From the IMG/VR virus record IMGVR_UViG_3300042147_000020, positions 124,001 through 188,000 of that record: a DNA stretch of 64,000 nt; one strand, given 5' to 3'. The stretch's first letter is position 1, and each line of letters begins with the position of its first letter. Of the stretch, positions 38,711 to 56,274 are shown one piece after another. Below the pieces are notes generated by a model. It made no database searches. It had not been told where the DNA came from and saw only the letters and a list, made by a program, of their open reading frames with translations. Both the position numbers and the translations under genes were made by a program.

Positions 38711-38813
38711 GGCTAAATTCTCTTGAAGGGCGGAACACGAGCCGGGTAATAGTATGGTGCGTATTCTTTTACAGGCAACTATAACATTCGCTGTTTTAAC
38801 AGGAGTCAACGGT

Positions 38814-41090: not shown

Positions 41091-41150
41091 TTCCTGACGG
41101 CACTGTGGTGACATTCTTAGGGGTGTCACCCCTTTAACATTTCTTTTAGG

Positions 41151-41534
41151 ATGACAACTATGGCTACCACTGCCGCTTTGCTAGCCTCACTGAAGGCTAG
41201 TGTGGATACAGCGGTTGCAACGCTTGCGGCTCTCGTAAAGCACGTGCCCAAACGCATCGTGGGTGAGTTCGTAACAGTTGCAGCCGGGGGTAACAAAGAG
41301 TACGACTTACAGACGCTGCTCGGTGTTAAACACACTGCGTTCGACAAGGACGCTGCTCTGGTCCACGTTCGGGTTAAGGATACGGTATCTGGCTCCCCTA
41401 CTCTCAACATGTATATCAACTCCGAGGCGATGATTACTCACGCCGTTCGGGCGAACCGTTACGTTCGGGTACTCAACCAGACTGACGCTTCGTTGGACCT
41501 GTACATCGGTGTTTCTGTTCCACGTCTACCTTAA
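41151..41534 (+). CDS. Small tail-fibre-associated protein
   Basis: 127-aa ORF in the fibre operon. Confidence 0.55.
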   Translation: MTTMATTAALLASLKASVDTAVATLAALVKHVPKRIVGEFVTVAAGGNKEYDLQTLLGVKHTAFDKDAALVHVRVKDTVSGSPTLNMYINSEAMITHAVRANRYVRVLNQTDASLDLYIGVSVPRLP

Positions 41535-41544
41535 GGGGTGATTC

Positions 41545-43977
41545 ATGGCTAACTTAGCATTAAGCGTTGCTCCTGGGTATTACCTCGAAGCACAAAACGC
41601 AAGCTGGGTGCTGGGGGCGAACGTTGACTTCGTTAGCTTCACGGAGGATGGTCCTACACCGACCGTCTCTAAGTACATCGCTTACGACACCTTGGTGCCG
41701 CCTAACCCGTTTATCGCGGTGACACAGGACGGTACCGGGAACGTTGTTTACGATGGCGGTTTCCCCAAGTTCTATAACAACGTAGCCCCAGCCCTAGGTA
41801 CTCCGTTCGCTTCACTTGGTGCCCAATGGAAGTACCTGTACAACGCACTAAACTTCTGTGCCAACCCTACGAAAGTGGCGGCAGGTAATAAGAAAGTTCT
41901 GGTTCTGGGTGACGTCATTTCCACTGGTTCGTATCCGGTTAAGGGTACGGGGACCAATGGCTTCTTCACTGCCATGACCAACATCTGTAGTATCGCTGGC
42001 TACACGCCAACGTTCAAAGATGTGAGTGACTACGCTGGCGGTACAGTATTGAACCCTACCTTGGCTGAGTTGAATGAATATTGCTGCGTGTTGTTCTTCT
42101 CGACGGCGTACAACAGCCTGAACACGGACTTGATTACAGAGTCTGCGATCACTGACTTTGCAACCTATCGTCAGCAGGGTAACGGCATTACGTTCATCAC
42201 CGACCACGGTAGTACGCCGTTCACTGACATTTCTCAGATTCGCCTACACCCACAAGGCACTGGCTTCTACGCCACGGCTAACCGGATCATGGCAAACTTT
42301 GGCGCATTCTTCAGCGGCGACTACAACCGGACTCCGGTGAACGTTGGGTTTATTCGTAGCACTTACGGAGACCACCCACTGTACGCTGGGATGTTAGATA
42401 CCGAGAACATTGCGGCTGGTGGTTCTGAATCAAAGATCATCCTCCCGAACTTCACCAAGTACACGCAAGCTAACATCCCGAACGTGTCGATCGCCAACAA
42501 CGGTGTGAACTCGATCAAAGCCATTGCAATGATGAATGATGGTACGGTTGAAACCTACAACTTTGTCTACGTGATTGCGACGGGTCAGTTGTTGAAAATC
42601 ACCGATGCGAACGGTGTGGAGATCAACTCTCTTCCGTCTGGATTCCGTGTCAGTCGAACGTTCAACGTGGAGGTGATCGGCGCTGGGTTGGGGTCGATTG
42701 TAGGTGACATCTTGCTCAATGGTCGTCGTGTAGCTGAACTGAGTTACAGTGAGGCTTTGGGTTCGGTCGAAGCTTGGTACGTTGGCGGAAGTCAATTTAT
42801 CCCGGTTAGAAACGGCGACCTCTACGAGATCCGCATTACCAGCCCATTCACCTTTAGTCGTCAGTTACCGGTGACTCGTAACCACCCTGGGGTCGCTATA
42901 ACCGCTAGGTTGGCAATGAAGATCAAGATAATGAAAGACAACGGGTTGTCGGGGTCTCACCCTAACGCCGTAATTCGAGATGCTTTGGCCCAGATGAACT
43001 TGGACTACTCGCACCTTCAGAATTACTTACACGGTGACTCGGCGTCTAACCTGAAAGTGTTGTACAAGTACTTTGCAGGTGAGTTGGACCTAGCTCCGAT
43101 GAGCGTCTACGCCTATCCTTCGGTTGCTCTGGCTGCGGATGCGATGTCACGATTGGTACCGCCCTCACAAGCCGCGATCTTCAACACATGGGACCGGTTT
43201 GTGAACAACGAGTACTTCCCCGGTGGGGTTGGTGCTACGGGTGAAGCCGCTGGATGGGTTTGGGATGCTGCGAAACAAGCCGCAGTGATGCCGTTGAACA
43301 CCGGCGGTTGGGTTGGCTTTGTGTCTCCCGATCTCGTCGACAACTACGTGTTGGATGTCGTGATCAAGTCGGATAACGCAGACGACGATAACAACGGTTT
43401 GATTCTGGCCTTTAACCGGGTAGCGAGTGTCAACAACCGCTTAATCATCAACGCACAACGCGGTGGTGGTTTGAACCCGACGTTCTCACACGGAGTATAC
43501 GTTAACACAACGCTCCCTGCGATCGCCCAGTCGGATTTCGCGGGACACCAAGCCCCTAACGCTGGGGATGGTTGGTCAGGTCGTTTCACTCGTATCCGCG
43601 TTACTCGAACGGGGGACAACTTCAAGGTCGAGTGCAGTCCTTGGAACTCAATGCTATTCGATCCGGCGGGAACGTTTACCTTCACTCTGAATGATCGACC
43701 AGATCTGGCTCAGTTTAAAGGAAGGAAAGCTTACGGTCTCATCAACCAGTCTCAGTCGCAGACGTACTTCACCACCCTCTCCTTTAAAGGGGGTCAGTTG
43801 TACGACATCGTAGTGGATGCGTCCTCGAACAAAGTTTACCGTTACTCAAACGGAGCGTGGTCATTACTTACTGGGCTCGATGTCCGGGATGTCTTCAGCG
43901 CCCCACGTACCTTGGTGAACTCGGAAACCGATGCGTCGTTCAAGGTAAACCTCGACGGCTCGATCACCCCACTTTGA
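41545..43977 (+). CDS. Virion/tail protein with a possible C-terminal ConA/TSP_C-like lectin domain
   Basis: 810 aa, beta-rich, with DNADDDNNGLILAF...GWSG..TRIRVTRTG. Confidence 0.55.
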   Translation: MANLALSVAPGYYLEAQNASWVLGANVDFVSFTEDGPTPTVSKYIAYDTLVPPNPFIAVTQDGTGNVVYDGGFPKFYNNVAPALGTPFASLGAQWKYLYNALNFCANPTKVAAGNKKVLVLGDVISTGSYPVKGTGTNGFFTAMTNICSIAGYTPTFKDVSDYAGGTVLNPTLAELNEYCCVLFFSTAYNSLNTDLITESAITDFATYRQQGNGITFITDHGSTPFTDISQIRLHPQGTGFYATANRIMANFGAFFSGDYNRTPVNVGFIRSTYGDHPLYAGMLDTENIAAGGSESKIILPNFTKYTQANIPNVSIANNGVNSIKAIAMMNDGTVETYNFVYVIATGQLLKITDANGVEINSLPSGFRVSRTFNVEVIGAGLGSIVGDILLNGRRVAELSYSEALGSVEAWYVGGSQFIPVRNGDLYEIRITSPFTFSRQLPVTRNHPGVAITARLAMKIKIMKDNGLSGSHPNAVIRDALAQMNLDYSHLQNYLHGDSASNLKVLYKYFAGELDLAPMSVYAYPSVALAADAMSRLVPPSQAAIFNTWDRFVNNEYFPGGVGATGEAAGWVWDAAKQAAVMPLNTGGWVGFVSPDLVDNYVLDVVIKSDNADDDNNGLILAFNRVASVNNRLIINAQRGGGLNPTFSHGVYVNTTLPAIAQSDFAGHQAPNAGDGWSGRFTRIRVTRTGDNFKVECSPWNSMLFDPAGTFTFTLNDRPDLAQFKGRKAYGLINQSQSQTYFTTLSFKGGQLYDIVVDASSNKVYRYSNGAWSLLTGLDVRDVFSAPRTLVNSETDASFKVNLDGSITPL

Positions 43978-43999
43978 ATAATTAAGGAATAGGTTAGTC

Positions 44000-45625
44000 A
44001 TGGGCACAATCATTCTTAAGTACCCAGAAGACCCTACTGGTATCAATCCGAACAACTTGGTCATCAACGAACCTCATGACTTGGGACCTGCCCGTAACCG
44101 GGCATTCGTTCCCAACTACGGCTCCTACTTCACGGAGTCGATGATTGTCACTGAGGCGTCGACCGGTCGGGTGCTCACCAAGGGTGTTCACTACATCGCG
44201 GCACAACTGCAACAAGATGCCACTCTGGCGATGGACAAAGAGATTTGTGCTGTCGTCGTGGTAACTGATCCTGACGTTCTGGATAGCTTGCTGTTCACTT
44301 ACCAAGTTGTTGGTGGTGTGTTCAGTACTTCGGCTTCGGCCTTGGCGAAGATGATCGAGAACCTCGACATCGACGAGCGTGCAGTCGAGTGGGGTTCTGT
44401 TATTGGTATCCCTTCAGCTTTCCCTCCTGCTCCTCACTTACACGACATCGGTGACCTGTACGGTTTCGAATACCTCGTGGAAGCGTTGGATGCACTGCGT
44501 AACGCAATCCTGATTGGCGACGAAGCTGCTCATGATGAATTGCGTCAGTTCATCAACTACCAAGACGGGTTGCTCCAAGCCGCTCTGGATGACCTTCGTA
44601 GTGACTTCGAAACACACGAGAACAACAAGGCCAACCCACACGCGGTGACGAAACTCCAAGTGGGTTTGGGACAAGTCCAAGACTACGGGATTGCAACAAC
44701 CGCTGAAGCACAGGCCGGTACTGTTAACAATAAGTACATGACCCCACTGCTGACGTCTCAAGCAATCACGCAGTTGGCGTTGATCCCGCTGAACAACCAC
44801 ATCGCGGATAAAACGAACCCACACGCAACGACTAAAGCACAGGTCGGTTTGGCACTGGTAGAAAACTACCAACCTGCGACTCAAGCTGAAGCCGAAGCAG
44901 GGACTCGTAGCGATCGTTACCTCACACCGTTGACGACTAAGCAAGCCATTACCTTCCAGGCACTGGTTCCGCTGAACACGCACATCAACGATCAGACCAA
45001 CCCGCACAACACCACCAAGCTACAAGTCGGCCTCGGTAGTGTTCAGGACTACGCAATCGCGAACCAAGCCGAAGCGGAGATCGGTACCTCGAACCTGAAG
45101 TACATGACTCCCCTGCGGACTGCTAACGCCATTGCTACTCAAGCCCTTGTGCCTCTGACCACCCACATCAACAACGTCAACAACCCACACGCAACTACCA
45201 AGGCGCAAGTAGGTTTGGGTAGTGTTGATAACTACGCTACTGCCACCACGGCTGAAGCGCAAGTGGGCGCAGTGAATACGAAGTTCATGACTCCGTTGCT
45301 CACTGCTCAGGCCATCACACAACAAGCGGTTACACCGCTGAACAACCACATCAACAACCTGAGTAACCCGCACCAAGTCAGCAAGTCACAAGTTGGCTTG
45401 AGTCAGATCCCTAACGCAATCACAGCTTCACGGGCCTTCAACTCCGATGCTGCTCTGTTGACGGCCAAAGGGATGTACGACCACACAGTGTCGGCTGACC
45501 ACGATGCTCGCTACGCTCCAAAGAACACCGCTGGTGTTGACTGCTCGGTTCACTGGAACGGTTCGGGGGTGTACGTCTGGGGTGGCGGTACGTGGCGCCA
45601 GATTTGGCCTGCTCAGTGGTCGTAG
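44000..45625 (+). CDS. Tail fibre-like protein with the same repeats, phiKZ gp145-like
   Basis: N-terminal YPEDPTG..N....EPH, paralogous to 38814; four full repeats and one partial repeat; Trp-rich C-terminus. Confidence 0.75.
   Translation: MGTIILKYPEDPTGINPNNLVINEPHDLGPARNRAFVPNYGSYFTESMIVTEASTGRVLTKGVHYIAAQLQQDATLAMDKEICAVVVVTDPDVLDSLLFTYQVVGGVFSTSASALAKMIENLDIDERAVEWGSVIGIPSAFPPAPHLHDIGDLYGFEYLVEALDALRNAILIGDEAAHDELRQFINYQDGLLQAALDDLRSDFETHENNKANPHAVTKLQVGLGQVQDYGIATTAEAQAGTVNNKYMTPLLTSQAITQLALIPLNNHIADKTNPHATTKAQVGLALVENYQPATQAEAEAGTRSDRYLTPLTTKQAITFQALVPLNTHINDQTNPHNTTKLQVGLGSVQDYAIANQAEAEIGTSNLKYMTPLRTANAIATQALVPLTTHINNVNNPHATTKAQVGLGSVDNYATATTAEAQVGAVNTKFMTPLLTAQAITQQAVTPLNNHINNLSNPHQVSKSQVGLSQIPNAITASRAFNSDAALLTAKGMYDHTVSADHDARYAPKNTAGVDCSVHWNGSGVYVWGGGTWRQIWPAQWS
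44614..45400 (+). repeat. Tandem ~183-nt coding repeats (4 full + 1 partial)
   Basis: NPHAVTKLQVGL, NPHATTKAQVGL, NPHNTTKLQVGL, NPHATTKAQVGL and NPHQVSKSQVGL. Confidence 0.85.
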
Positions 45626-45685
45626 TAAAAAAATAAACACTCAAGGAATCCTATAAGAATTTACTTAGCCTTGAGGGATTGTGAA

Positions 45686-46195
45686 ATGTTGCGCAAGTTA
45701 GATGATTTCAAGTTTGACGGAATCACGGAGTCTACTCTACGGGTGGATGACGTTCTCGCAAGTCACTTTCCTTACGAACAGGGTTTGGTGAAGTACGTAG
45801 TAGGTGGGCGTTCGATGGACGCCCACAGTCCTTGGGACGCAGTTCAACATGAGGACTGCGTGTTTAAGGTTGAGGGTTACGATAAACTCAACCTTAAACT
45901 TTTTGACGAGTGTCGCTATCTAGCGGATCACTTCAAACATATCGGACCGGTGACCTGTCATCTGTTCAAGTCTCCTCTCGGAGCAACCAGTTTCCCAGCA
46001 CACACTGATCCTGATGACGTAGTGTTACTTATGGTTAGTGGTGCTAAGCAGTTTGAAACCGACGACGGTGTGATCACTCTCAATGAGGGTGAGATCCTGT
46101 TTATTCCCGCTGGTTCTAAACACCGAGCAATCAACACAGAGAGTTCTCTGATGTTGAGCTTTGGGTTAGAGCGTTTTCTAGTTGAGAAACTGTAG
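45686..46195 (+). CDS. JmjC/cupin-fold 2OG-Fe(II) hydroxylase (YcfD/ROXA-like)
   Basis: SFPAHTDPDDV..L.VSG.K...L.EGEILFIP.G..H.A provides the HxD...H triad plus Lys. Confidence 0.8.
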   Translation: MLRKLDDFKFDGITESTLRVDDVLASHFPYEQGLVKYVVGGRSMDAHSPWDAVQHEDCVFKVEGYDKLNLKLFDECRYLADHFKHIGPVTCHLFKSPLGATSFPAHTDPDDVVLLMVSGAKQFETDDGVITLNEGEILFIPAGSKHRAINTESSLMLSFGLERFLVEKL

Positions 46196-47233
46196 ATGAC
46201 GTTTAAGACAATCTTTGTGAAGACCACGGGAACGTGTAATCTGAACTGCGATCATTGCTTCACCAACGGTAAGTCCGGTGACAAGACTCACTTTGATCCT
46301 GTGCAAACGGGTCAGTGGGTTAAAGAATTCATTGCTAAGTACTCACCCGACACACACCACCACTTGGAGCTACACGGCGGTGAACCATTCTTGGTCCCGG
46401 TGCGGGTGTTGACTCAGTTTGCTGCACAGTTTCGTGACTACGACAACGTGTCGATGTGTGCGAACTCTAACCTGACCTTTAAGTTGACTCCAGAGATCCT
46501 CTCATTCATTGACGAGTACTTGGGTCAACAAGTGGGCACCAGTTGGGATTACTGGATTCGCTGGAGTAATCAGAAGCAGTTTGACCTGTGGAAGAGCAAC
46601 TTAGCGGTCTTGAAAGCTCGGGGTGTCAGGATCTGTTTGAAAGTGTCTGTCAGCAGGCCGCTGGTGGCTTCTACAGCCGATTGGTTCCTCGACCAGATGG
46701 ATGCACTGGGTGTCGATGAAGTAGCCTTAGAACGCATTACAGTCGGTGGGAATTCTGTGGTCAACATGGACGTCTTTCCCGACAATGAGGAGCAGGACAA
46801 TTGGTACCTAGCCCTCTACAAGCGTTATAAGGAACGTAATCCTTCTTATGACATTAAAACCCTAGACCTGATTGAGCAGAAGCTTAAGTTAGGTATGGTG
46901 AAAGTCGACACCAATTGTCGTAATTGCGAACAAAACGTGGTGACGATCAATTCAAACGGTACCTTGGGAGGCTGCCCTAACGTAGCCACCGAACACCGAC
47001 ATGCTACCATACAAGAACCTGTGAAGGTCTTTCTGGAGTCTGACGGGCGTGTTAATGAAATAGTCAAAGAACTTGATTTCTCTGAGTCTTGTGTGCGTTG
47101 TGACGTATTCGATCTATGTGGTGGCGACTGTCACCGACTACCTTGGCAAGAAGGTCGATGTGGCGGTTTAAAGAATACCCTCCGACACCTGTCAGGCAGA
47201 TCCACACAATCCAATTTAATTCTGAAGGTGTAG
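46196..47233 (+). CDS. Radical SAM/SPASM protein 1
   Basis: CNLNCDHC, HGGEPF, and C-terminal CRNC..GGC..CVRCDVFDLCGGDC..C. Confidence 0.92.
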   Translation: MTFKTIFVKTTGTCNLNCDHCFTNGKSGDKTHFDPVQTGQWVKEFIAKYSPDTHHHLELHGGEPFLVPVRVLTQFAAQFRDYDNVSMCANSNLTFKLTPEILSFIDEYLGQQVGTSWDYWIRWSNQKQFDLWKSNLAVLKARGVRICLKVSVSRPLVASTADWFLDQMDALGVDEVALERITVGGNSVVNMDVFPDNEEQDNWYLALYKRYKERNPSYDIKTLDLIEQKLKLGMVKVDTNCRNCEQNVVTINSNGTLGGCPNVATEHRHATIQEPVKVFLESDGRVNEIVKELDFSESCVRCDVFDLCGGDCHRLPWQEGRCGGLKNTLRHLSGRSTQSNLILKV

Positions 47234-47237
47234 CGTT

Positions 47238-47789
47238 ATGGCTAACTTAGCAAAAGCCGATGTTGCGTATTATGCGAATGTCCTCATTCGCAACAATGCC
47301 AACGCAGGCATCTCTTGGGGTACTAACAACTATCCAGCAGGGGCTCTACCGGAATGGTTCGGTGGCACAACTGCTGGGCGTGGGGAGATCTTCGGGGCTG
47401 GTGATTTGGCAAACCCACCCACTGGTCGTCAGGTCAGTTCTGCGCTCAACAATTTTGCAGCGATGTTTGCTGCTATCCGTGCACTGCGTATCGTTATCTA
47501 CTATCGCAAGACGGGCTCTAAGAACACCACGGCGGGTGACTACACGTATGTCGCTTATGACGGCACCGCGATTGCACACACGGCTTGGGCGGTAGGTGGC
47601 GTGGGTAACGACGTACCGCCGGTACTTACCAGAGGGGTTCCAGCTCGAGCTGGGGACGTCTGGTCCTACTGTGATCGCCTCTGGCAGCGCTACAACCAAC
47701 TGTGTCGCGCGACAGCCATGACGGCGTACAACACCATTTGCCACACCAGTTGCCATGGCGCTTGCCACGGTAGTCGCGGTCGTCGTTAA
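47238..47789 (+). CDS. 183-aa protein with C-terminal (CHxx)3-RGRR; candidate substrate of the rSAM/oxygenase cluster
   Basis: Gly/Ala/Thr/Asn-rich body ending ICHTSCHGACHGSRGRR, with no enzyme motif. Confidence 0.65.
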   Translation: MANLAKADVAYYANVLIRNNANAGISWGTNNYPAGALPEWFGGTTAGRGEIFGAGDLANPPTGRQVSSALNNFAAMFAAIRALRIVIYYRKTGSKNTTAGDYTYVAYDGTAIAHTAWAVGGVGNDVPPVLTRGVPARAGDVWSYCDRLWQRYNQLCRATAMTAYNTICHTSCHGACHGSRGRR

Positions 47790-47809
47790 TTAACCAAGGC
47801 GTGTTACCC

Positions 47810-48538
47810 ATGGAAAAGATTGTCACTACAGCCCCGATCCCAATTGCTGTGTTGAAGCGCAAGTTCACCGAAGACATCCACTTCGCCATCGACTACGCCA
47901 ACAGTAAGTTCAAGGGTAAGACCCTGATCACTTACCTCAGTAACCTCAACATCAAGTGCAACCTCATGTTGCAAGACGTTGAAGAAGCATTGGCGTTGAC
48001 TGCCGAATACCTCTACATTCCAGCCGTGGCTTCAATCCCCGATCTGGAAGACGTGGTGATCAACTTGCTGTTGGCCTATCAAGGTAAACAGAACTGGTTG
48101 AATTTTGACATCGACCCATTCGTTGCCGAGCACCGTGAAATCATCGAACTGTGGATCAAGCGTATCAACTCGCTTCCGCTGTTCGCCTTACACTGCTCCG
48201 GTCTGTACAAAGAACACGTCGACACCTTCCCTAAAGACGACGACAAGTCGATTGCAGGGATCAACTTCGTCCAACTGATCAAGCACCCATTGTTCCCACT
48301 GTTGGTTGCCAACATTGACGAGTGCGACTTCAGTTACAACGAAATGTGGTTCAACGAGTATGTATTTGCTGGTTCGAACCTGTTCTCGTTCTTCGCCGTT
48401 AAAGAGAACCCATTGTACCTTGGGTTGATCTCACAACTGGCACCTGATCCTGAAGACAGGGAGATTGATCAAATCTTGGCAGACACAATTGCCGAGTACA
48501 ACGCTGTCATGGGAGAATCCAATGTTCCACTTATTTAA
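47810..48538 (+). CDS. Hypothetical protein in the rSAM cluster
   Basis: ~242 aa, overlapping the next gene. Confidence 0.7.
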   Translation: MEKIVTTAPIPIAVLKRKFTEDIHFAIDYANSKFKGKTLITYLSNLNIKCNLMLQDVEEALALTAEYLYIPAVASIPDLEDVVINLLLAYQGKQNWLNFDIDPFVAEHREIIELWIKRINSLPLFALHCSGLYKEHVDTFPKDDDKSIAGINFVQLIKHPLFPLLVANIDECDFSYNEMWFNEYVFAGSNLFSFFAVKENPLYLGLISQLAPDPEDREIDQILADTIAEYNAVMGESNVPLI

Positions 48539-49586
48539 CGACGTCTACGTTCAGTCTGAGATCTTCATGGCGTCGGACTTGGACCGCATCAACATCTCCC
48601 CGACGACTGGTTTTGAGTACCACAAGACTTTCGCTGATGACCCCGAGTTGACCCAACTGGGTTTCGCCAAGAGTCTTGATGACTTCACTGGGGAGAAGTT
48701 CCTAGAGCTGTTGCGTCTGGCAGCTAACAACCCCACCAAGGTCTTTGTGTTTGTCGATTCGGCAACCTACTCACGACTTTACGCGATTCAACTCAAGGCC
48801 CTGTTCCCGAATATCTCGTACGAACACTTCAAGTTCTTCTTCGTTTGTAAGAAGGCAGTGATCGACGGTCGGGCTGCTACGTCCTACGCACCAAGCATTG
48901 ATCCTCGTGCCGGGGCTAAAATCAACAACGCAGTCGTGGACGAGCTATACCACAAAGACGACTCCGAATTGATCGAAGCGATGGCTGACGTACTGAACGA
49001 CGAAGGGGTTAACCTCTCCCTCGAATGGAACGTCCTGAAGTTGTTGACCGACGGTGAGATCGGCACTATCCCTGATAAGGTCAAGAACCTCGTCAAGCGG
49101 GTAGCGCTGTCAGTAGTCCACGAGACTCTGGGTTCGGTAGGGTTCTCGGTCACTGATCCTCGTAACTGGGAGTTCTTGGGTTGTGACGCTGACACCCTGT
49201 TGGAATACGACAGTATCTTCCAGGGCTGCACCAACCTCGGTTACATGAACAACCCTGCGTTCTTGGGCAAGTCGACCTTGGGCTTGAAGATGCCGGACCA
49301 GTGGATGATCGAGTTGATCAAACAAGTCCGTGAGTTCCTCGTGTTGAGCGGTGAAGTCAAGTCGCATCTGTTCATGGGCGTGATCCTTGAACTGTACGAG
49401 GGTGGCTTCAAGTACGAAACTGCTGAGGACTGCATCGCTGCGGTAACGAGCGTGTTTGCTAACGCTGAACGGACCGTCAGTCTGCCACACAGCGACCTCG
49501 GTAAGTACGACGAGAACTTGATCCGCTTCTTGCTACGTAGCGATCGCAAAGAAATCACTGCACTCCGGGAAGGTTCGCAATGGTAG
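48522..49586 (+). CDS. Hypothetical protein in the rSAM cluster
   Basis: ATG at 48522 (MFHLFND) with a GGAG RBS; acidic and helical. Confidence 0.7.
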   Translation: MFHLFNDVYVQSEIFMASDLDRINISPTTGFEYHKTFADDPELTQLGFAKSLDDFTGEKFLELLRLAANNPTKVFVFVDSATYSRLYAIQLKALFPNISYEHFKFFFVCKKAVIDGRAATSYAPSIDPRAGAKINNAVVDELYHKDDSELIEAMADVLNDEGVNLSLEWNVLKLLTDGEIGTIPDKVKNLVKRVALSVVHETLGSVGFSVTDPRNWEFLGCDADTLLEYDSIFQGCTNLGYMNNPAFLGKSTLGLKMPDQWMIELIKQVREFLVLSGEVKSHLFMGVILELYEGGFKYETAEDCIAAVTSVFANAERTVSLPHSDLGKYDENLIRFLLRSDRKEITALREGSQW

Positions 49587-50593
49587 GATTAATACCGCTA
49601 GTGGATGTCCTCCAAGACAAAAAGGGGGCAACTAAAGAAGCTCACCTGATTCTGTTCGAGAAGTGCAACCTGCGGTGTTCGTTCTGCCACCAGGATCACG
49701 ACTCCGAAGTAGGGATGGAAGCCGAAGCCATCATGCAGAAGGCTCTCACCCTCATTGAGACTGGAGACCCAGAAGCTCCAATCGTGATCAACCTCACAGG
49801 CGGGGAGCTGTTCTCGGACAACATCCCCGATTGGATGTTCGGTTACTACCTGTCGGCTGGACAACTGCTACTGCGTCACTTCAAGCGGGCTAAGTTGGTC
49901 TGGGGTACAAACCTGATCTACAGTGACCTCTTCCGAGTAATGCGGTTGATCAGCATGCTGCGGGCCGAGGCTAGTAAAGATCAGAACGTATGTTTGGCAA
50001 CGTCCCACGACCCAGCGGGACGCTTCACTGTAGGTAATCGGGAACTGTTTCTACGGAACCTGATGGTCGTCAAGCCTTACGTTGAAACTGTGAACGTGGT
50101 GATCACTCGACAGAACATCCAGTTGTTCCTCAGTGGTAATGAGGGTAAAGAGTTTGACTGGTTGTGTCGTAACTTCGATGTGTATTTCGATCACTACATT
50201 CCCTCCGAGCGTTACCAAGAGCACCAACCGACTGAGTCAGCTATCAGTCAGCTCTACTTAGCCCTCGACAAGAAGTACCCAAACTCCTACCCCATCAAAG
50301 CGTGGAAGGAGAACCGTTTCAATGACACCACCTGTCGCTCTACGAAGATCATCAACAAAGATGGCGTAGTGACAACGTGTTGGTCCGAAGCGGGTAAGGA
50401 CTCTGTCTTGGACGAAGGGGCTGGCTTGAAAGCCAAGAACGAAGCCGAAGAGCGTTTCCTTGAGCACTACGGTTGTATGTCGTGTGAGTACTTCCAACGA
50501 TGTGGCTTACGGTGCTTCTTGCACCACAGCTTCATTGAAGGTACGACTACCGAATGTGAAATCAAAAAGATGTTCGATCAGATACTGGTCTGA
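49580..50593 (+). CDS. Radical SAM protein 2 with a C-terminal Cys cluster
   Basis: CNLRCSFC, TGGELF and CMSCEYFQRCGLRC..C. Confidence 0.9.
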   Translation: MVGLIPLVDVLQDKKGATKEAHLILFEKCNLRCSFCHQDHDSEVGMEAEAIMQKALTLIETGDPEAPIVINLTGGELFSDNIPDWMFGYYLSAGQLLLRHFKRAKLVWGTNLIYSDLFRVMRLISMLRAEASKDQNVCLATSHDPAGRFTVGNRELFLRNLMVVKPYVETVNVVITRQNIQLFLSGNEGKEFDWLCRNFDVYFDHYIPSERYQEHQPTESAISQLYLALDKKYPNSYPIKAWKENRFNDTTCRSTKIINKDGVVTTCWSEAGKDSVLDEGAGLKAKNEAEERFLEHYGCMSCEYFQRCGLRCFLHHSFIEGTTTECEIKKMFDQILV

Positions 50594-50598
50594 AGTGT

Positions 50599-50625
50599 CG
50601 GGGTGGGTAACACCACCCCGGTTTT
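50599..50625 (+). terminator. Hairpin inside the rSAM cluster
   Basis: cggggtgg-gtaaca-ccaccccg-gtttt directly before ATG 50626. Confidence 0.55.
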
Positions 50626-51741
50626 ATGTTCGTCATTAAGGAGTCCTCTGTGGACCTTATCATTAAACCCACCGTGGCGTGCAATTTCAAGTGTACTTTC
50701 TGCTCCAGTACTAAATTGTCCGAGGACCCTAAAGAGATCGTAGAGCTAGAGGAAATTGAAGCTTTCATCAAGCGGTTTCCTAACACCAACACCGTGATCG
50801 TGAACGGTGGTGACCCTTTGATGATGCCTCCGAGTTACTACTGGTCGCTGATTGACATCTTGGACCGTCATAACTGTCCTGCCACGATTGCGTTTACCAC
50901 TAACCTGTGGGCGTTCTATAAAAAGCCTGAGCTGTGGGTAGACTTGTTTCGTCATCCGCGTGTGGGCGTTGCTACTTCGTTTCAATACGGTGACAAACGA
51001 CTCAAGGGTGACTTGAAACCGTTCACCGAAGCTGAATTCTGGGCCTGCTCTGATCTGATGTTGGAGCTGGTGGGTTATCGACCGACGTTCATTGCGGTCA
51101 TTGACAAAGACAATGAAGACTCTGTACTCGACACGGTGTTACTGGCTGCTCGTATGGGAGTAGAGGTCAAGCTGAATCACGCACTGGCTTCAGGTCCAGA
51201 GGTGGACTATAAAGGTGTGGTGATGGGGAACCAAAACAAGTTCTTCACTCAAGCTGACATCTACCGACACTACTTGGCCATTTATGACGCTGGGTTAGAG
51301 GAACACGAGTACAACACTAAACAGATGACCCGTCGTCTGCGTAATGGTGCAACCACCTGTCCGTTGGCTCGTAACTGCGACCAACACATCCGTGCATTAC
51401 AACCGGGTGGTGGTAACTACTTCTCGTGTGGAGCTTTCGGGGATGACAATGAATACCCTATCGACTTTCAGCGTGAGATGTCTGGCGAGTTCTTTACTCC
51501 GTTAGAGAGTCAACCTGAACTGTTCAGTATGAAAGACGCCTGTGCTGCGTGTCCGATGTTTGCGATCTGCAACGGGTGCAAGAAGACCATTGCCGACACC
51601 AAACGTTTGGGCCTAACTGAACACCACTGTCGCACAATGAAATCGTTGGCTCCTCGGATCATCGAGGCTAACGGTCTAACGGGTCAGTTAGAACCCACTC
51701 CGTATGAAGATGAAACTCCCGTTTTGATTGCCCGAGGTTAA
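50626..51741 (+). CDS. Radical SAM/SPASM protein 3
   Basis: CNFKCTFC, NGGDPL and TTCPLARNC..FSCG..CAACPMFAICNGC..HC. Confidence 0.92.
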   Translation: MFVIKESSVDLIIKPTVACNFKCTFCSSTKLSEDPKEIVELEEIEAFIKRFPNTNTVIVNGGDPLMMPPSYYWSLIDILDRHNCPATIAFTTNLWAFYKKPELWVDLFRHPRVGVATSFQYGDKRLKGDLKPFTEAEFWACSDLMLELVGYRPTFIAVIDKDNEDSVLDTVLLAARMGVEVKLNHALASGPEVDYKGVVMGNQNKFFTQADIYRHYLAIYDAGLEEHEYNTKQMTRRLRNGATTCPLARNCDQHIRALQPGGGNYFSCGAFGDDNEYPIDFQREMSGEFFTPLESQPELFSMKDACAACPMFAICNGCKKTIADTKRLGLTEHHCRTMKSLAPRIIEANGLTGQLEPTPYEDETPVLIARG

Positions 51742-51742
51742 A

Positions 51743-52714
51743 ATGAAGCCTGTTGTCCTCTCCGTGAATCCATGGTACTTCTGTAACTTTCGCTGCTCGT
51801 TCTGTTATCTGACCGAACAACAACTCAGTGACCGTAAACTATTACCGCTAGAACGGTTGGCGGAGATGGTAGACGAAGTACAAGCCGCAGGTTACACCGT
51901 TGAACACATCGACATCTATGGGGGTGAAGTGCTGTTACTGCCCGCTGATTACCTCAACGGGATGAAGCAAGTCTTCCACGACCGAGGGATTGACGATCTG
52001 TGTCTGATCACCAACCTGTCTCTGGTGAATGACGTAGCACTCGATGATGACTACGAGTTGTCGGTGTCGTACGATTTCGAAGCCCGTGAGAAACATGAGA
52101 AAGTCTTTGACAACATGCTTGCCTTACCTCGACAGTTTAACGTGTTGAGTTTGGTGGGTCGTAAGTTCTTGGACGTCGTTACTCCAGACGAATACGTACA
52201 CACCCTGAACCTGCTCTCCCAGCTCTGGTGTGTGGAACTTAAGCCGTACAGCGAGAACCAAGCCAACGCTGACGCAGTGTCGTTCAAAGAGTTCGAGGAC
52301 TTCGTGTGGGCAGTGATCAAACACCCTGACCGTGAGTTCTATCTGGAGAACGAATCCCTGATTCGCAAAGCGGCTGAAACCAAGACTCGTAATGCGTTCA
52401 GTGACAATCACATCTACATCACCCCTGCGGGTCGTTACGCGGTACTGGAGTTTGATGCCAACGACCGTGAGTTCTTCTTGGAGCTGGATGACTTAGCTGG
52501 TTATCAAGCCTGGTGTGCACTTGAAAAAGAGCGGGTTACCGCCAATGAGTTTTGCAGTAAGTGTCAATTCAAAGGCGGGTGTTTATCCGAACACCTAAGA
52601 GACGTTAGGTCGTTAGAGAACTCCTGTAACGGGTTCCACGACCTGTTAGTGAGGTGGGTAGATGAAGGTAGTCCAACACAGACAGAGACTCGAGATCACG
52701 CTCGATCTGTTTAA
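51743..52714 (+). CDS. Radical SAM protein 4
   Basis: CNFRCSFC, YGGEVL and CSKCQFKGGC..SC; ATG at 51743 with a GAGG RBS. Confidence 0.9.
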   Translation: MKPVVLSVNPWYFCNFRCSFCYLTEQQLSDRKLLPLERLAEMVDEVQAAGYTVEHIDIYGGEVLLLPADYLNGMKQVFHDRGIDDLCLITNLSLVNDVALDDDYELSVSYDFEAREKHEKVFDNMLALPRQFNVLSLVGRKFLDVVTPDEYVHTLNLLSQLWCVELKPYSENQANADAVSFKEFEDFVWAVIKHPDREFYLENESLIRKAAETKTRNAFSDNHIYITPAGRYAVLEFDANDREFFLELDDLAGYQAWCALEKERVTANEFCSKCQFKGGCLSEHLRDVRSLENSCNGFHDLLVRWVDEGSPTQTETRDHARSV

Positions 52715-53678
52715 AGGTTGTGGTCATTCCTGCGGTGGCTGCATGATTGATAAAAGTTTGGGTGGAGACGTGAAAGATCTCCCCGAACTCTTAGCCCTGA
52801 TTCAAGAAATGGTCGGGGTGGGTTACGTAGCGTTTGACCTCGGTGTAGGACCGACGGACTACATGACTGCTGATAACCGTCTCGAAGTGATGCAGAACCG
52901 AACCTTCCAAGAGATGGCTCAACAGTTTCATCAGGTAACATTCAACGCAGCCTTCCTCGACACTAACCTGCTCAACTACGGGGTGATGTGTTACGAGATT
53001 GATTGTGCAGTACCAGACAAGCCGATTCGCTTTCTGATCCCAGCCGTACCGGCTCATTTCAAGAATGAGAAGTTCGGCTTGATGATTAAAGAAAAGTTGG
53101 AGTACATCAAAAAGAACCTGATCGTAGCTCGACTGAACGAAGCAGGTTTTGTGGTGAACTGTACACAGGAAACTGTGGACGAGAAGTTTGAGGAGCACCT
53201 ACGTAATGGGTTTGATATTGAATTCGTGGTGGACAAAGACGACATCCTCACCATCCCTTACGGACGAGCCCCAAACAAAGACTTGCTGGTGGCGCAGAAT
53301 GTTCGTCGAGTGTCTCACCGAATCAGTTCTTTCTATGCGGGGCTGAATGGGGAAGACGAACGTCGACGTAACCCTGATCTCCACTACGACACTGGGACAA
53401 TGGTTAACCTGTTGTACACCGGGGGTAAACTGTACTGGGTTCCTTTCCTCAAAGACGACTGTCCGTTCATAGACGACGACTTTGTGATCCCTCGACCTTG
53501 GACTATGGCTAACCTGTTAGAAGCCCGTAATCGCGCTCGTGATAGCTCCTTGGACTATCTGGAAGGCAGTGAGTGTATGGAGTGTCCTCACCTCGGGAGC
53601 TGTGCCGAGAAAGGCATCACCAGCATCATGCAGAAGTTGTCGATTCGGGATTGCTTAGTGGGGTTGGCCGATGTTTAA
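52662..53678 (+). CDS. Divergent radical SAM-like protein 5
   Basis: CGHSCGGC; GPTD in place of GGEP; CMECPHLGSC..DC. Confidence 0.75.
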   Translation: MKVVQHRQRLEITLDLFKGCGHSCGGCMIDKSLGGDVKDLPELLALIQEMVGVGYVAFDLGVGPTDYMTADNRLEVMQNRTFQEMAQQFHQVTFNAAFLDTNLLNYGVMCYEIDCAVPDKPIRFLIPAVPAHFKNEKFGLMIKEKLEYIKKNLIVARLNEAGFVVNCTQETVDEKFEEHLRNGFDIEFVVDKDDILTIPYGRAPNKDLLVAQNVRRVSHRISSFYAGLNGEDERRRNPDLHYDTGTMVNLLYTGGKLYWVPFLKDDCPFIDDDFVIPRPWTMANLLEARNRARDSSLDYLEGSECMECPHLGSCAEKGITSIMQKLSIRDCLVGLADV

Positions 53679-54717
53679 CGAATATGGCGTGATCTCTGTC
53701 AACCTCACGATGGAGATCCTAAAAGGCTGTGGGTTCAGTTGTAGTGACTGTGCCGTACAGAAAGACTTCACTACCTCAGACATTCCTCCAGAGGACTCAC
53801 AGGACCTCCTAGGGCTACTGGATGACCTGCGTGTCAATGAAGTTCGTCTGTTTGAGTTCACTGTAGGTCCAACTGACTTTATCAGTGCCCAGAATGGCTT
53901 CGAGACCTTTAAGCATCCGTTAGTCTTGGGATTAGCTGAACGGTTTGAATCCATGACGTTGTCGTTGGCAATGTTGAGTGACAACCGCTTGGTGGAATTG
54001 GGTGGGGTGATTGACCGTATGATCCCCGAGAAGAAGTTCCGGTTGGTGATCCCTGCCACCCTAAAGAACTTACAGAAACCCAAGTACGTGGAAGCCTTAC
54101 GTCGCCGAGTACACTTGTTGCGCGACAGCCTCCATTCTGCGAAGTTCTACCAGATCTACTTGAACTCCAACATGGTACAGGAGAACCTGAACGAACTGTC
54201 GTACGAGACGGTGTCGAACTCAGGGGCGGCTGACTTAGGGGTTCGTACCACGTTGGAGCACGGCTTCGGTCATGCCCGAGCAGGCTTTCAAAACTTGTTT
54301 AACCGTGATCGGTTCATCTACGACCTGAAGCTCTACGTGGAGCGCAGTAAGGTGCTGAAGGACACCCGGTACCAACGTAAGCTGATTCCGATAACGACCG
54401 ATGCGTTAGAGCTGACGTACCGTGCAGGCAAGCTTTATTACACACCGGTGGTGATTGAGAAGTTCCACATCTTTGATCCGGTGTTTGAGATCCCTAAACC
54501 GTGGACAGCACAAGCGGTACTCGATTTCAAAGAGCAGTTGTACTACCGCATGTTAGAAAAATACGTGGTACACCCATTATGTAGAGATTGTTGCTTTGTC
54601 AACACCTGTGCTTTGGGGGATCATCATGTGGTCATGGATTACCTGAAACACGATGAGTGTTTGACCGACATGAAGAACCGCCACGATATGGATCGAAAGG
54701 ATACCCACGGTGAGTGA
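53671..54717 (+). CDS. Divergent radical SAM-like protein 6 (paralog of protein 5)
   Basis: CGFSCSDC, GPTD, Y..GKLY, IP.PWT and CRDCCFVNTC..EC. Confidence 0.75.
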   Translation: MFNEYGVISVNLTMEILKGCGFSCSDCAVQKDFTTSDIPPEDSQDLLGLLDDLRVNEVRLFEFTVGPTDFISAQNGFETFKHPLVLGLAERFESMTLSLAMLSDNRLVELGGVIDRMIPEKKFRLVIPATLKNLQKPKYVEALRRRVHLLRDSLHSAKFYQIYLNSNMVQENLNELSYETVSNSGAADLGVRTTLEHGFGHARAGFQNLFNRDRFIYDLKLYVERSKVLKDTRYQRKLIPITTDALELTYRAGKLYYTPVVIEKFHIFDPVFEIPKPWTAQAVLDFKEQLYYRMLEKYVVHPLCRDCCFVNTCALGDHHVVMDYLKHDECLTDMKNRHDMDRKDTHGE

Positions 54718-55138
54718 ACATAAAGAGTATCAACGCCTGTACGCCCAACTGGTCACAGATCACCCCGATGACTTTGCCAAGATGGAGATCGTCGAGTCTG
54801 AGGAGCTGGTGGAGAACGCTAAGCACTACTTCCGCGAAGCCACCTTCCCGCTGATCTATCCAGCGAAGTCAATGGCTGTCGCTGTAATCTACGCCCTGTT
54901 ACTGGAAGAGACTTACGGGTTACATCCGTTTGACTCCCTTAAAGACCCAGACCTATTCTTAGGTCAAGACCCATACTTCCGTCCGTATGACCAACATCCC
55001 CGTGAATACGATCAATTGATCTGGTGGGTGGCGGAACAACCGAACTGGAAAGAAATGGGCTGGGCACCAAAGACAGTTGAATACTTCTACCTTGAGTGCA
55101 CTGAAGCTGGTATCAGTAAAATCAACGAAGGGGTTTGA
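54710..55138 (+). CDS. Hypothetical protein in the rSAM cluster
   Basis: 142 aa with a GTG start overlapping the upstream stop. Confidence 0.65.
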   Translation: MSEHKEYQRLYAQLVTDHPDDFAKMEIVESEELVENAKHYFREATFPLIYPAKSMAVAVIYALLLEETYGLHPFDSLKDPDLFLGQDPYFRPYDQHPREYDQLIWWVAEQPNWKEMGWAPKTVEYFYLECTEAGISKINEGV

Positions 55139-55139
55139 A

Positions 55140-55697
55140 ATGAAATATGTTGAACCGTGGAGCACTCAATTAGCCCACTTCAATGTCGCAGACTTAGTCG
55201 ACTTGGGTGCCTTGCGTGACGAGATCTTCAATCTACACTGTTTGACCGAAGGGGACGACCCAGGACAGAAGTGGATCACCTCTGAGTTCGTACCTGAAAT
55301 TATCCGCATGCGTGATGAACTGATTACCCCACGGGTGATTCAGTACGCCAAAGAGTTGTGGGACTACGACATCCCCAAGATTGAAGTAGAGACCTCGGGT
55401 AAGTGGATTCCTGAAGGTGAAGGACTGTTCCCCCACGTTCATGGTGGTTCGTGTATCAGTACGATCTTTTACCCCTCACCAACTAACTTCGGGTTGAGTT
55501 TTTTCGACCCTCGTTCCAATGCTGGCCGGGGTTATCCGAAAGAGATCCGTGATCGGTTCTTTAAAGCCTTCCCGATTGTTCCTGCGGCGGGGGACATTTG
55601 GATCTTCCCAAGTTACTTACAGCACAGTGTGTCGCACGTCCAAGAGAACGTCCGGTTGAGCATGCTGTGTGAATACTACTTGCGGGAGAACGTTTGA
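55140..55697 (+). CDS. Putative 2OG-Fe(II) oxygenase 1 (TIGR02466-like)
   Basis: PHVH...STIFY...FDPR...P..GDIWIFPSYLQHSV...RLS. Confidence 0.82.
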   Translation: MKYVEPWSTQLAHFNVADLVDLGALRDEIFNLHCLTEGDDPGQKWITSEFVPEIIRMRDELITPRVIQYAKELWDYDIPKIEVETSGKWIPEGEGLFPHVHGGSCISTIFYPSPTNFGLSFFDPRSNAGRGYPKEIRDRFFKAFPIVPAAGDIWIFPSYLQHSVSHVQENVRLSMLCEYYLRENV

Positions 55698-56263
55698 TGG
55701 AACTGTTCCGTCCTTGGCAAACCAGTATTGCCAGAATCAACGTGGCTGAGTTGTGTGACTTGGATCAGCTTACTCAAGAGATCCTAATTGTCTCTGCCGG
55801 CGGCACTGTAGCCGTCCCACAAGACGCTACACGCGACGATCCGTTCGTAGGTGGCATCGTTACTCTACGTGACGACGTAATCACCCCCAGAGTCATGGAG
55901 TACATTCGCACAGAGTACGGTCTCAACTGTGATCCTGAAACGGTTGCTATGGAAACGTGGGGGATGAACATCGCTCCCGGTAGTGACTTGGAAACACACA
56001 TCCACGGTTTGTCCAACTTCACGACGGTGTTCTACCCCTGTGAGTCAGACGCTCGCTTAGTACTGGTTGATCCTCGTTTGAATGCAGCACGAGGGTTCTC
56101 TAAGTCTTTGCGTGACCGTAACTTCGGTAACCTACGAGTTGACCCTAAACCCGGAGACTTGTGGATCTTCCCAAGCTTCGTCCCCCATTCTGTGACGTCA
56201 GTAGGTAACGAGTTCCGCCTGTCTTTGGTGAACGATTACTTCCTAGACCCCACCCTCGATTAA
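55697..56263 (+). CDS. Putative 2OG-Fe(II) oxygenase 2
   Basis: THIH...TVFY...VDPR...PGDLWIFPSFVPHSV...RLS. Confidence 0.82.
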   Translation: MELFRPWQTSIARINVAELCDLDQLTQEILIVSAGGTVAVPQDATRDDPFVGGIVTLRDDVITPRVMEYIRTEYGLNCDPETVAMETWGMNIAPGSDLETHIHGLSNFTTVFYPCESDARLVLVDPRLNAARGFSKSLRDRNFGNLRVDPKPGDLWIFPSFVPHSVTSVGNEFRLSLVNDYFLDPTLD

Positions 56264-56274
56264 GAGACCTGAAC

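Follow-up and report, generated by a model that had tools for sequence, protein, structure and literature searches.

A family of phage proteins with a Cys-His repeat tail, encoded within a radical-SAM cassette and probably modified by it

We describe a small phage protein that ends in a Cys-His repeat tail and whose gene sits inside a cassette of four to six radical-SAM (rSAM) enzymes and iron oxygenases in essentially every locus not cut by a contig end. A homologue of the protein is present in phage particles. This suggests that phages probably rebuild one of their own structural proteins chemically, although the chemistry is unproven, and we found no paper that studies this system. The protein was first noticed in the window, a stretch of 64,000 nucleotides (positions 124,001 to 188,000) of the IMG/VR virus record IMGVR_UViG_3300042147_000020, where it is encoded together with the genes listed in Table 1.

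Sequence and predicted structure of the CH-tail protein

The open reading frame encodes a 183-aa basic protein that is rich in Gly, Ala, Thr and Asn and ends in ICHTSCHGACHGSRGRR. It starts at ATG, with a GAAGGTG Shine-Dalgarno-like site upstream, and its stop codon lies at 47787-47789. Residues 168-183 comprise three Cys-His-Xaa-Xaa units followed by R-G-R-R. This is the only CH..CH match in all six frames of the window, while 1.1e-4 CH..CH..CH matches are expected from six-frame composition, and we reject chance as its origin. The underlying DNA is only a weak 12-nt repeat with 2.1 copies. A sequence-only reading of the window had proposed that this is a folded structural protein carrying a RiPP-like core, unlike the acidic enzymes around it in composition. 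The composition claim holds: G+A+T+N+W+Y amounts to 52.5% with a pI of 9.5, against 21–30% and pI 4.5–6.1 for the cassette enzymes and accessory proteins, and 38–40% for the neighbouring fibre proteins. Two of the three units are H-x-S (HTS and HGS), as stated in that reading. The two upstream Cys residues that it also counted, C145 and C157, are present but are not conserved in the family, and we reject a role for them.

Table 1. Coordinates and assignment of the CH-tail gene, its tail elements and the surrounding genes in the window.
Feature	Position	Strand	Assignment	Observations
CH-tail protein	47238..47789	+	183 aa; predicted folded alpha/beta body (residues 1-169), flexible C-terminal tail	AF2 pLDDT 88.8, pTM 0.83, tail about 57
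CH units	47739..47774	+	CHTS CHGA CHGS; proposed modified core	Fourth position S, N or A in more than 98% of cases
Terminal R-G-R-R	47775..47786	+	Proposed recognition or anchoring element; family consensus R-x-R-R	Once, at the very end, even in 13- and 14-unit tails
Cupin	45671..46195	+	Cupin / JmjC-like Fe(II) oxygenase, first gene of the cassette	Pfam JmjC_2 5e-9, Cupin_2 1e-8; syntenic in 73 loci
rSAM1	46196..47233	+	Radical SAM enzyme with full SPASM motif; stop 4 nt before the CH-tail gene	CNLNCDHC and CX2CX5CX3C; SPASM TIGR04085 30 bits against a cut-off of 27; motifs kept in 78-80 of 80 orthologues; profile hits to 8vpo, anSME 4k36, CteB 5wgg and YydG
hypA	47801..48538	+	Universal 245-aa accessory protein, no catalytic signature	phrog_20767 1.5e-44; immediately downstream in 80 of 80 loci
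hypB	48522..49586	+	Accessory protein of about 355 aa	Likely start ATG 48522 (M20 of the listed ORF, which starts at TTG 48465, is invariant in alignment)
rSAM2	49580..50593	+	Radical SAM / SPASM enzyme	CNLRCSFC and CX2CX5CX3C; phrog_1802 9e-35
rSAM3	50626..51741	+	Radical SAM enzyme with the architecture of an anaerobic sulfatase maturase	Pfam Radical_SAM 2.9e-12; full-length profile alignment to anSME 4k36 at 1.8e-6
rSAM4	51728..52714	+	Radical SAM enzyme	CX2CX5C auxiliary motif
rSL5	52662..53678	+	Divergent radical-SAM-like enzyme, mainly in the jumbo-phage clade	CGHSCGGC; CX3CX2C in 26 of 26 orthologues; DT01 orthologue annotated as radical SAM
rSL6	53671..54717	+	Divergent radical-SAM-like enzyme, mainly in the jumbo-phage clade	CGFSCSDC; CX3CX2C in 28 of 29 orthologues
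p142	54710..55138	+	Conserved acidic accessory protein	Syntenic in 42 or more loci; no Pfam hit
2OG-Fe(II) oxygenases	55077..56829	+	Three genes (55077-55697, 55694-56263, 56275-56829)	Pfam 2OG-FeII_Oxy_5 3e-9, 1e-8 and 2e-7
Upstream context	38754..45625	+	Two NPH-repeat tail-fibre-like proteins (38754-41090, 44000-45625) and an 810-aa protein (41545-43977)	Fibre-like proteins syntenic across the jumbo-phage clade; 810-aa protein in only four of those loci

The AF2 model supports a folded body with a low-confidence tail. Neither Pfam nor NCBIfam yields a hit for the protein, and PHROGs gives only a weak hit to phrog_35144. A sequence profile search of the PDB gave no match, and the AF2 model finds no solved fold with Foldseek against the PDB (best E 0.47, TM below 0.2), while BFVD returned only uncharacterised phage proteins. 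Among cultured phages, a megablast search with 12 kb of the window found nothing, tblastn of the protein found only DT01 and tblastn of a T4-like member found nothing. BLAST masks the tail itself as low complexity, and cultured homologues had to be reached through hypA.

Conservation of the tail

The family contains at least 734 cluster representatives, essentially all from phages. The tail consensus [VI]-CH[AST]S-CHS[SN]-CH[GS][SA]-R-x-RR is retained while the body falls to about 25% identity. In a 55-sequence alignment at 24–51% identity, C168, H169, C172, H173, C176, H177, R180, R182 and R183 are invariant, and 208 of 226 family proteins end in exactly three CH units plus R-x-RR. The tail behaves like a modular core. 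Relatives carry 2, 4, 5, 13 or 14 CH units, and it also sits on tandem short paralogues with a different body, still next to the cassette. In one minor lineage (P0213, gene L059:7998-8945), the body is followed by four CH units, a Gly/Asp/Pro linker, the S-D-E-R-L-K cleavage-type motif and a Peptidase_S74 domain (E 1.5e-11), so that linker and S74 domain replace the terminal Arg motif. Gly_rich_2 fusions are also found in relatives. These fusions point to a fibre-type protein. In contrast, the window protein and more than 95% of the family have no S74 domain and end in R-x-RR, and the AF2 body is globular alpha/beta and not a beta-helix fibre.

The expansion to 13–14 units resembles multi-core RiPP precursors, and the cassette resembles a RiPP gene cluster in its architecture. 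An alternative reading is that the body is a long leader and that the modified tail is cleaved off to give a diffusible RiPP or a redox or metal cofactor, by analogy with PQQ or mycofactocin. We consider this unlikely. No protease or exporter is conserved in the cassette, the body is conserved and confidently predicted to fold, a homologue is found in virions, and the S74 fusion places the tail inside a fibre-type protein.

Synteny with radical-SAM enzymes

In about 90 loci, the gene lies in one co-directional cassette next to fibre or baseplate genes. The order is cupin, rSAM1, the CH-tail protein, hypA, hypB (not in every case), rSAM2, rSAM3, rSAM4, with two more rSAMs in jumbo phages, p142 and 2OG oxygenases. 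This arrangement holds in essentially every locus not cut by a contig end, in 80 viral loci, 10 genome-collection loci and in phages DT01, RSF1 and Atu_ph07, and no homologue with readable flanks lacks rSAM neighbours. T4-like relatives have baseplate or DUF4815 giants at the position of the upstream fibre-like genes of the window. No terminator lies directly after the CH-tail gene that would set it apart from the enzyme genes. Ralstonia phage RP31, which we considered as a second source of proteomics data, carries a different rSAM cluster and no CH-tail protein.

The enzymes look active. CX3CX2C is kept in 97–100% of each of the six rSAM orthogroups, and the SPASM-type Cys motifs are kept, with CX2CX5CX3C in rSAM1 and rSAM2 and CX2CX5C in rSAM3 to rSL6. 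Their nearest solved relatives, anSME, CteB and YydG, modify proteins or peptides. rSAM3 is 55–73% identical across the family, better conserved than the body of the CH-tail protein. Among the non-enzyme cassette proteins checked, only the CH-tail protein has conserved Cys and His, while hypA and hypB have none. hypA and hypB gave no Pfam hit and no solved relative, apart from a weak rhodanese-like stretch of about 50 aa in hypB that has no conserved Cys. The confident AF2 model of hypA (pLDDT 91), the only accessory protein modelled, matches no PDB fold. No RiPP recognition element (RRE/PqqD-like) was detected by Pfam or NCBIfam in any cassette protein, and the enzymes could instead act on the body of the protein or on neighbouring fibre proteins.

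Another possibility is that the tail is an unmodified metal or iron-sulfur site, in which Cys3His3 of an oligomeric virion protein would ligate Zn, Fe or an Fe-S cluster while the rSAM enzymes act on another target. The regularly spaced Cys-His pairs, the basic end, the virion location of a homologue and the fibre-type fusion are compatible with this view, the number of metal-binding repeats can vary, and comparable sites probably exist in phage lambda gpL, with an Fe-S cluster, and in T4 gp37 and gp12, with Fe and Zn bound through His. However, it does not explain why four to six rSAM enzymes co-occur with this protein across very different phages whose fibre genes differ. In addition, the near-invariant fourth position of each unit (Ser/Asn, or Ala) is not needed for metal ligation, and no other conserved candidate substrate was found among the cassette proteins checked. 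We regard this explanation as improbable, but it is the strongest of the alternatives.

Presence of a homologue in virions

Published mass spectrometry of Agrobacterium phage Atu_ph07 detected the homologue gp170 in virions with 8 unique peptides and 35% coverage (PMC6102473, Table S5). gp170 is a family member according to hhalign (98.7%) and Foldseek (E 2e-4), and its computed mass matches at 31.894 kDa. It was most abundant in the top gel band, band 1, although 30-kDa proteins peak at band 8. The loading buffer described for this gel lists no reducing agent, so that the band-1 species could be disulfide-linked through the tail Cys rather than cross-linked by an enzyme, and the published data do not report the C-terminal peptide. 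The rSAMs gp165, gp168 and gp171, hypA (gp169) and the cupin (gp172) are absent from the virion list. RSF1 ORF071 is annotated only as a hypothetical protein and not as a virion structural protein.

The packaging of the homologue without the enzymes bears on a further reading, in which the protein is an iron or Fe-S chaperone or scaffold that delivers iron or clusters to the cassette enzymes. Every enzyme in the cassette depends on iron, Cys/His-rich C-terminal tails may also occur in metallochaperones, and marine T4-like genomes rich in rSAM genes also carry Fe-S assembly genes (PMC5332604). Given the virion packaging, the fibre-chaperone fusion, a composition and pI resembling structural proteins, and the lack of similarity to IscU, NfuA or A-type carriers in our family and PDB searches, this reading is very unlikely and is largely rejected.

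Comparison with known radical-SAM systems

The sequence-only reading had drawn on HxsA and SCIFF, which remain analogies only. In the His-Xaa-Ser system (HxsA with the paired rSAM maturases HxsB/HxsC and HxsD; TIGR03976-03979), a C-terminal run of His-Xaa-Ser units is likewise encoded beside several radical-SAM/SPASM enzymes, and H-x-S is found in 197, 151 and 174 of 208 tails for units 1, 2 and 3 (95%, 73% and 84%). The CH tail differs in its period of 4, with an invariant Cys before each His, in its R-x-RR end and in its carrier, a folded phage virion protein of 180 aa and not a peptide of about 100 aa. The protein matches no NCBIfam family at E <= 0.01, including HxsA (TIGR03979). The rSAMs score 15–24 bits against the HxsB and HxsC cut-offs, with 23.8 bits against 370 for HxsB and at most 23.3 bits against 267.9 for HxsC, and the cassette also holds a cupin, 2OG oxygenases, hypA and hypB.

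For anSME, which acts on the C/S-x-P/A-x-R motif of sulfatases, the similarity lies in rSAM/SPASM enzymes of about 340–370 aa without an N-terminal RRE that would act on a whole protein rather than a short peptide. The last unit, C-H-x-x-R, has Cys and Arg at the sulfatase spacing. However, only one of the three units has the Arg, and position +2 is G, S, N or C, with Ala in 4 of 208 and never Pro. The TIGR03942 scores of 43.0 bits for rSAM1 and 34.8 bits for rSAM3 lie far below the cut-off of 349.

Thioether-forming SPASM maturases (SCIFF/CteB, PapB ranthipeptides, QhpD on the QhpC protein subunit) share the repeated Cys in a C-terminal core. PapB, CteB and QhpD are among the weak full-length rSAM hits, and QhpD appears to be a precedent for an rSAM that cross-links a protein subunit. 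The C-x3-D type of pattern with an Asp, Glu or Thr acceptor is absent, no SCIFF or PapA family hit was found, and all enzyme scores are far below the cut-offs, with 20.3 bits against 425 for the SCIFF maturase TIGR03974.

As for His-containing triceptides and dynobactin (HtkB/HaaB; DynA), the CH tail has an aromatic-X-X motif with His as the first residue, in the form H-x-S, and a His-C2-to-Lys-C-beta link has been described (PMC11499958). YhhB, FxsB, AmcB, GrrM and DynA are among the best NCBIfam hits for rSAM1, rSAM3 and rSAM4, but these hits cover mostly the N-terminal rSAM core and lie far below the cut-offs. Here, the substrate would be a folded virion protein, and four to six different rSAMs would serve one short core.

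Discussion

The conservation of the motif and the presence of rSAM neighbours support the interpretation of the sequence-only reading, while neither an actual modification nor metal binding nor the adhesin role it also considered is shown. We favour, with moderate confidence, that the protein is a virion component associated with the tail fibre or baseplate, whose folded body carries a flexible, exposed tail, (Cys-His-Xaa-Ser)3-Arg-Xaa-Arg-Arg. In the infected cell, the co-transcribed cassette would modify this tail before or during assembly, with hypA, hypB and p142 acting as non-catalytic helpers, and only the modified protein would enter the particle. The most likely chemistry is radical cross-linking of the Cys and/or His side chains, followed by hydroxylation. 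The cross-links could be thioethers as made by sacti-/ranthipeptide synthases, or His-to-C-beta links as in His triceptides and dynobactin. The product would be a rigid, protease-resistant knot, possibly metal-binding or linked between subunits.

In a further-reaching view, which we consider about as likely as not, phages from at least two unrelated lineages, phiKZ-like jumbo phages and T4-like myoviruses, carry a portable pathway that converts the (Cys-His-Xaa-Ser)n tail of a virion protein into a new protein-derived cross-linked or metal-binding structure at the tail or baseplate. This would be the first RiPP-style radical maturation of a virus particle protein, with a new protein fold, new accessory folds and probably new rSAM chemistry on Cys-His pairs.

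Radical-SAM maturation of ribosomal peptides and of a few cellular proteins is well known, but a dedicated multi-rSAM pathway aimed at a structural protein of a virus particle is not. Genome papers on jumbo phages (DT01, RSF1/RSL2, FLC6, S13) and on marine T4-like genomes list these rSAM, cupin and 2OG genes as unexplained accessory or metabolic genes, and our finding gives them a concrete, testable substrate. With a 16-residue tail, a defined enzyme set and cultured phages, the system is small and tractable, and tail plus cassette might work as a portable protein cross-linking or tagging module. Its study could uncover new rSAM chemistry on Cys-His-Xaa-Ser units and a new way for phages to stabilise or functionalise their host-recognition apparatus.

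The CH-tail protein and its family

The open reading frame encodes 183 aa and ends in YNTICHTSCHGACHGSRGRR, with the three Cys-His units at residues 168-179 followed by R-G-R-R at residues 180-183. No other CH..CH match exists in any frame of the window, and from six-frame composition 1.1e-4 CH..CH..CH matches are expected. The protein is basic with a pI of 9.5 and consists to 52.5% of G+A+T+N+W+Y, while the surrounding enzymes are acidic (pI 4.5-6.1) with 21-30% G+A+T+N+W+Y. The sequence-only reading, which had described a Cys-His triple repeat with a basic end on a body unlike the acidic enzymes around it, is accurate in this description. The only correction concerns the two further Cys that it counted just upstream, as C145 and C157 are not conserved in relatives.

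The window is part of the IMG/VR contig UViG_3300042147_000020 (238.8 kb). A phiKZ-type internal head protein encoded downstream of the cassette identifies it as a phiKZ-like jumbo phage. The protein has no Pfam or NCBIfam family. A word-indexed search found 80 homologues at 28-50% identity, and 79 of them end in CHxxCHxxCH followed by two or three residues and R-x-RR; one has Asn in place of the first His. An exhaustive profile search found 734 cluster representatives at E <= 1e-3, of which 115 reach E <= 1e-30. In an alignment of 55 sequences, the invariant columns are G28, P33, G43, T45 and G47, which belong to an N-terminal N-x-G-I-x-W-G-T-N...F-G-G-T-T-x-G motif, and C168, H169, C172, H173, C176, H177, R180, R182 and R183 in the tail. 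Over 208 three-unit tails, the consensus is [NTDS]-[VI]-C-H-[AST]-S-C-H-S-[SN]-C-H-[GS]-[SA]-R-[GS]-R-R. The fourth position of each unit is S, N or A in more than 98% of cases, so that the true unit is Cys-His-Xaa-Ser.

Coordinates of the features in the window and in related loci
Feature	Location	Strand	Remark
Tail-fibre-like proteins (two)	window 38754-41090 and 44000-45625	+	Repeats of about 40 aa, NPHxxTKxQVGLxxVxNxxxAxxxEAxxGxxxxxYMTPLxT; neither has a Pfam hit
CH-tail protein	window 47238-47789	+	183 aa
Three Cys-His units	window 47739-47774	+	Residues 168-179
hypB (accessory protein)	window 48465-49586	+	Probable true start ATG 48522, because M20 is invariant in the alignment
Terminator-like hairpin	window 50597-50622	+	10 pairs, 7 of them G-C, followed by TTTATGTT
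Protein directly after the cassette	window 56909-57586	+	Weak, below-threshold match to a peptidoglycan-binding domain; DT01 counterpart annotated as a putative transglycosylase
phiKZ-type internal head protein	window 57599-59164	+	
P0213, relative with Peptidase_S74 domain	L059:7998-8945		Four CH units
B12-binding radical SAM enzymes of the T4-like clade	L002:13515-15245; L004:14563-16164		Class B type, 533-576 aa
Contig in the 'Dysosmobacter segnis BX15' assembly	L094:1-4268 (NZ_JACOQI010000054.1)		13-unit CH tail
rSAM cluster of Ralstonia phage RP31	L100 (AP017925 76000-88000)		No CH-tail protein

Modularity of the tail

Of the 146 new top representatives, 134 have three CH units, 5 have two, 3 have four, one has five, one has thirteen and two lack the regular repeat. 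The jumbo-phage contigs L021 and L077 and the probable contaminant contig L094 carry 13-14 units, which are arranged as CHxSCHxxCHSNV(P)V modules with a single terminal (A/N)RGRR. Two contigs from Rhodobacteraceae MAGs (L095, L096) carry tandem paralogues of about 140 aa with a different body and the same tail, again beside cassette enzymes. In P0213, four units are followed by G-D-S-P-G-T-G-D-G-T-D-S-D-E-R-L-K and a Peptidase_S74 'chaperone of endosialidase' domain (E 1.5e-11), the hallmark of trimeric phage fibres and spikes. A further relative, P0130, adds an N-terminal Gly_rich_2 domain.

Genomic context

We matched the proteins of the window with phmmer against the ORFs of 86 loci. The order cupin, rSAM1, CH-tail protein, hypA, (hypB), rSAM2, rSAM3, rSAM4, (rSL5, rSL6), p142, 2OG oxygenase appears on one strand in essentially every locus not truncated by a contig end, where hypA, hypB and p142 denote accessory proteins and rSL5 and rSL6 divergent radical-SAM-like enzymes. 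hypA lies directly downstream of the CH-tail gene in 80 of 80 loci. A strong terminator-like hairpin lies between rSAM2 and rSAM3 of the window and may split the cassette into two transcription units.

The ten loci from bacterial and archaeal genome collections show the same arrangement, and most of them are MAG contigs. Five of the ten (L087, L088, L089, L092, L093) are contigs binned into Bdellovibrionota MAGs, and some of these have rearranged cassettes, such as an extra rSAM1-like gene or inverted blocks. The 4.3-kb contig L094 from a bacterial isolate assembly starts with the Nextera adapter AGATGTGTATAAGAGACAG and is most likely contaminant phage DNA. The 241-kb 'Streptomyces sp. CHB9.2' contig holding the entry P0004 likewise looks like a jumbo phage.

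Cultured phages with the cassette
Phage	Homologue
Pseudomonas pPa_SNUABM_DT01	37% identical, tail NTICHTSCHTSCHSARGRR
Ralstonia RSF1, RSL2, RsoM3USA, FLC4 phages	RSF1 ORF071, tail TVCHSSCHSSCHGSRGRR
Burkholderia FLC6, FLC8, SURPRISE13	Matches RSF1 ORF071
Agrobacterium Atu_ph07	gp170, tail DFCHSSCHASCHNSRSRR
Sinorhizobium Phosso	hypA match only

The upstream neighbours are always fibre or baseplate genes. In jumbo phages they are NPH-repeat fibres, and the two tail-fibre-like proteins of the window are conserved upstream of the cassette only in the jumbo-phage clade. In T4-like contigs they are DUF4815 giants, baseplate wedge, gp15 or S74 proteins, and the T4-like cassettes contain an extra B12-binding rSAM that the window lacks. 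In Ralstonia phage RP31, a different rSAM cluster lies directly after two YomR fibre-like genes. It holds a 537-aa rSAM, an anSME-like enzyme, a MoaA-like enzyme and MgoB, and its small ORF070 is rich in His and Tyr. rSAM clusters next to fibre genes may be a wider theme in jumbo phages.

Cassette enzymes and accessory proteins

All six rSAM orthogroups keep CX3CX2C in 97-100% of members. rSAM1 and rSAM2 keep CX2CX5CX3C, and the other four keep CX2CX5C. Every NCBIfam hit to a named rSAM family lies far below its family cut-off, with the hits spread over anSME, PapB, DynA, YhhB, FxsB, AmcB, HxsB, HxsC and SCIFF maturases. Profile searches against PDB sequences give 8vpo, anSME 4k36, CteB 5wgg, ChlB and YydG for rSAM1, and a full-length anSME alignment for rSAM3. 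The enzymes have no N-terminal extension that could be an RRE. rSAM3 is 55-73% identical across clades in which the body of the CH-tail protein is only 24-50% identical.

hypA and hypB have no conserved Cys or His and no known relatives, although about 50 aa at the N-terminus of hypB weakly resemble the inactive N-domain of rhodanese (3p3a, E 1.7e-4). The AF2 model of hypA (pLDDT 91) matches no PDB fold.

Predicted structure of the CH-tail protein

AF2 with the family alignment predicts a compact alpha/beta body with pLDDT 88.8 and pTM 0.83. The first Cys-His pair sits at the end of the last strand (E161-169), and the remaining tail has a pLDDT of about 57. Foldseek finds nothing in the PDB. 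In BFVD, it finds only uncharacterised phage proteins, including the DT01 and Atu_ph07 homologues and three larger paralogues of 504-660 aa in one uncultured myovirus, Myoviridae sp. ctijX18 (A0A8S5USV2, A0A8S5USJ8, A0A8S5USJ7). These three share part of the fold of the CH-tail protein body (Foldseek E about 1e-3), and the body domain may therefore also occur inside larger virion proteins.

Published virion proteomics

Supplementary Table S5 of Attai et al. 2018 (PMC6102473) lists gp170 among the Atu_ph07 virion proteins. It is recorded as 31.89 kDa with 8 unique peptides, 35.16% coverage and presence in bands 1-9, and it is most abundant in band 1. The mass that we computed for the CH-tail homologue is 31.894 kDa, and hhalign against the family profile gives 98.7% probability. 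In that table, proteins of about 30 kDa peak at band 8 and proteins of 87-127 kDa peak at band 1, so gp170 runs mainly as a much larger, SDS- and heat-stable species. Given that the described loading buffer has no reducing agent, disulfides through the tail Cys could explain this shift. The rSAMs gp165, gp168 and gp171, hypA (gp169) and the cupin (gp172) are not in the table.

Interpretation and relation to known systems

The invariant tail on a diverging and sometimes replaced body, the variable repeat number, the obligate, co-directional enzyme cassette with intact catalytic motifs, the absence of another candidate substrate among the cassette proteins checked and the packaging of the protein but not of the enzymes in Atu_ph07 together fit a structural protein whose tail is the substrate of the cassette, although that the tail is the substrate is inferred. 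The chemistry remains open, the options being thioethers on Cys, His-to-C-beta links on H-x-S, oxidation of Cys as by anSME, and hydroxylation by the cupin or 2OG enzymes. Alternatively, the tail could be an unmodified metal or Fe-S site, it could give rise to a cleaved diffusible product, or the protein could act as an iron chaperone, but each of these explanations accounts for less of the evidence.

Papers on phages that carry the cassette only list the rSAM, cupin and 2OG genes as accessory genes or guess at 'DNA repair/host metabolism', and full-text literature searches found no study of the system. The nearest concept is Haft's His-Xaa-Ser system, followed by the sulfatase/anSME pair and the thioether or cyclophane RiPPs. 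Membership of the His-Xaa-Ser system, of the sulfatase/anSME pair and of the thioether RiPPs was not supported by the family scores. For the cyclophane RiPPs, the motif is present as H-x-S, and the enzyme hits to their families are far below the cut-offs. rSAM maturation of a ribosomal product is already known, and it would here be applied to a virus particle protein. The predicted folds of the protein and of hypA match no solved fold, and the core motif is new.
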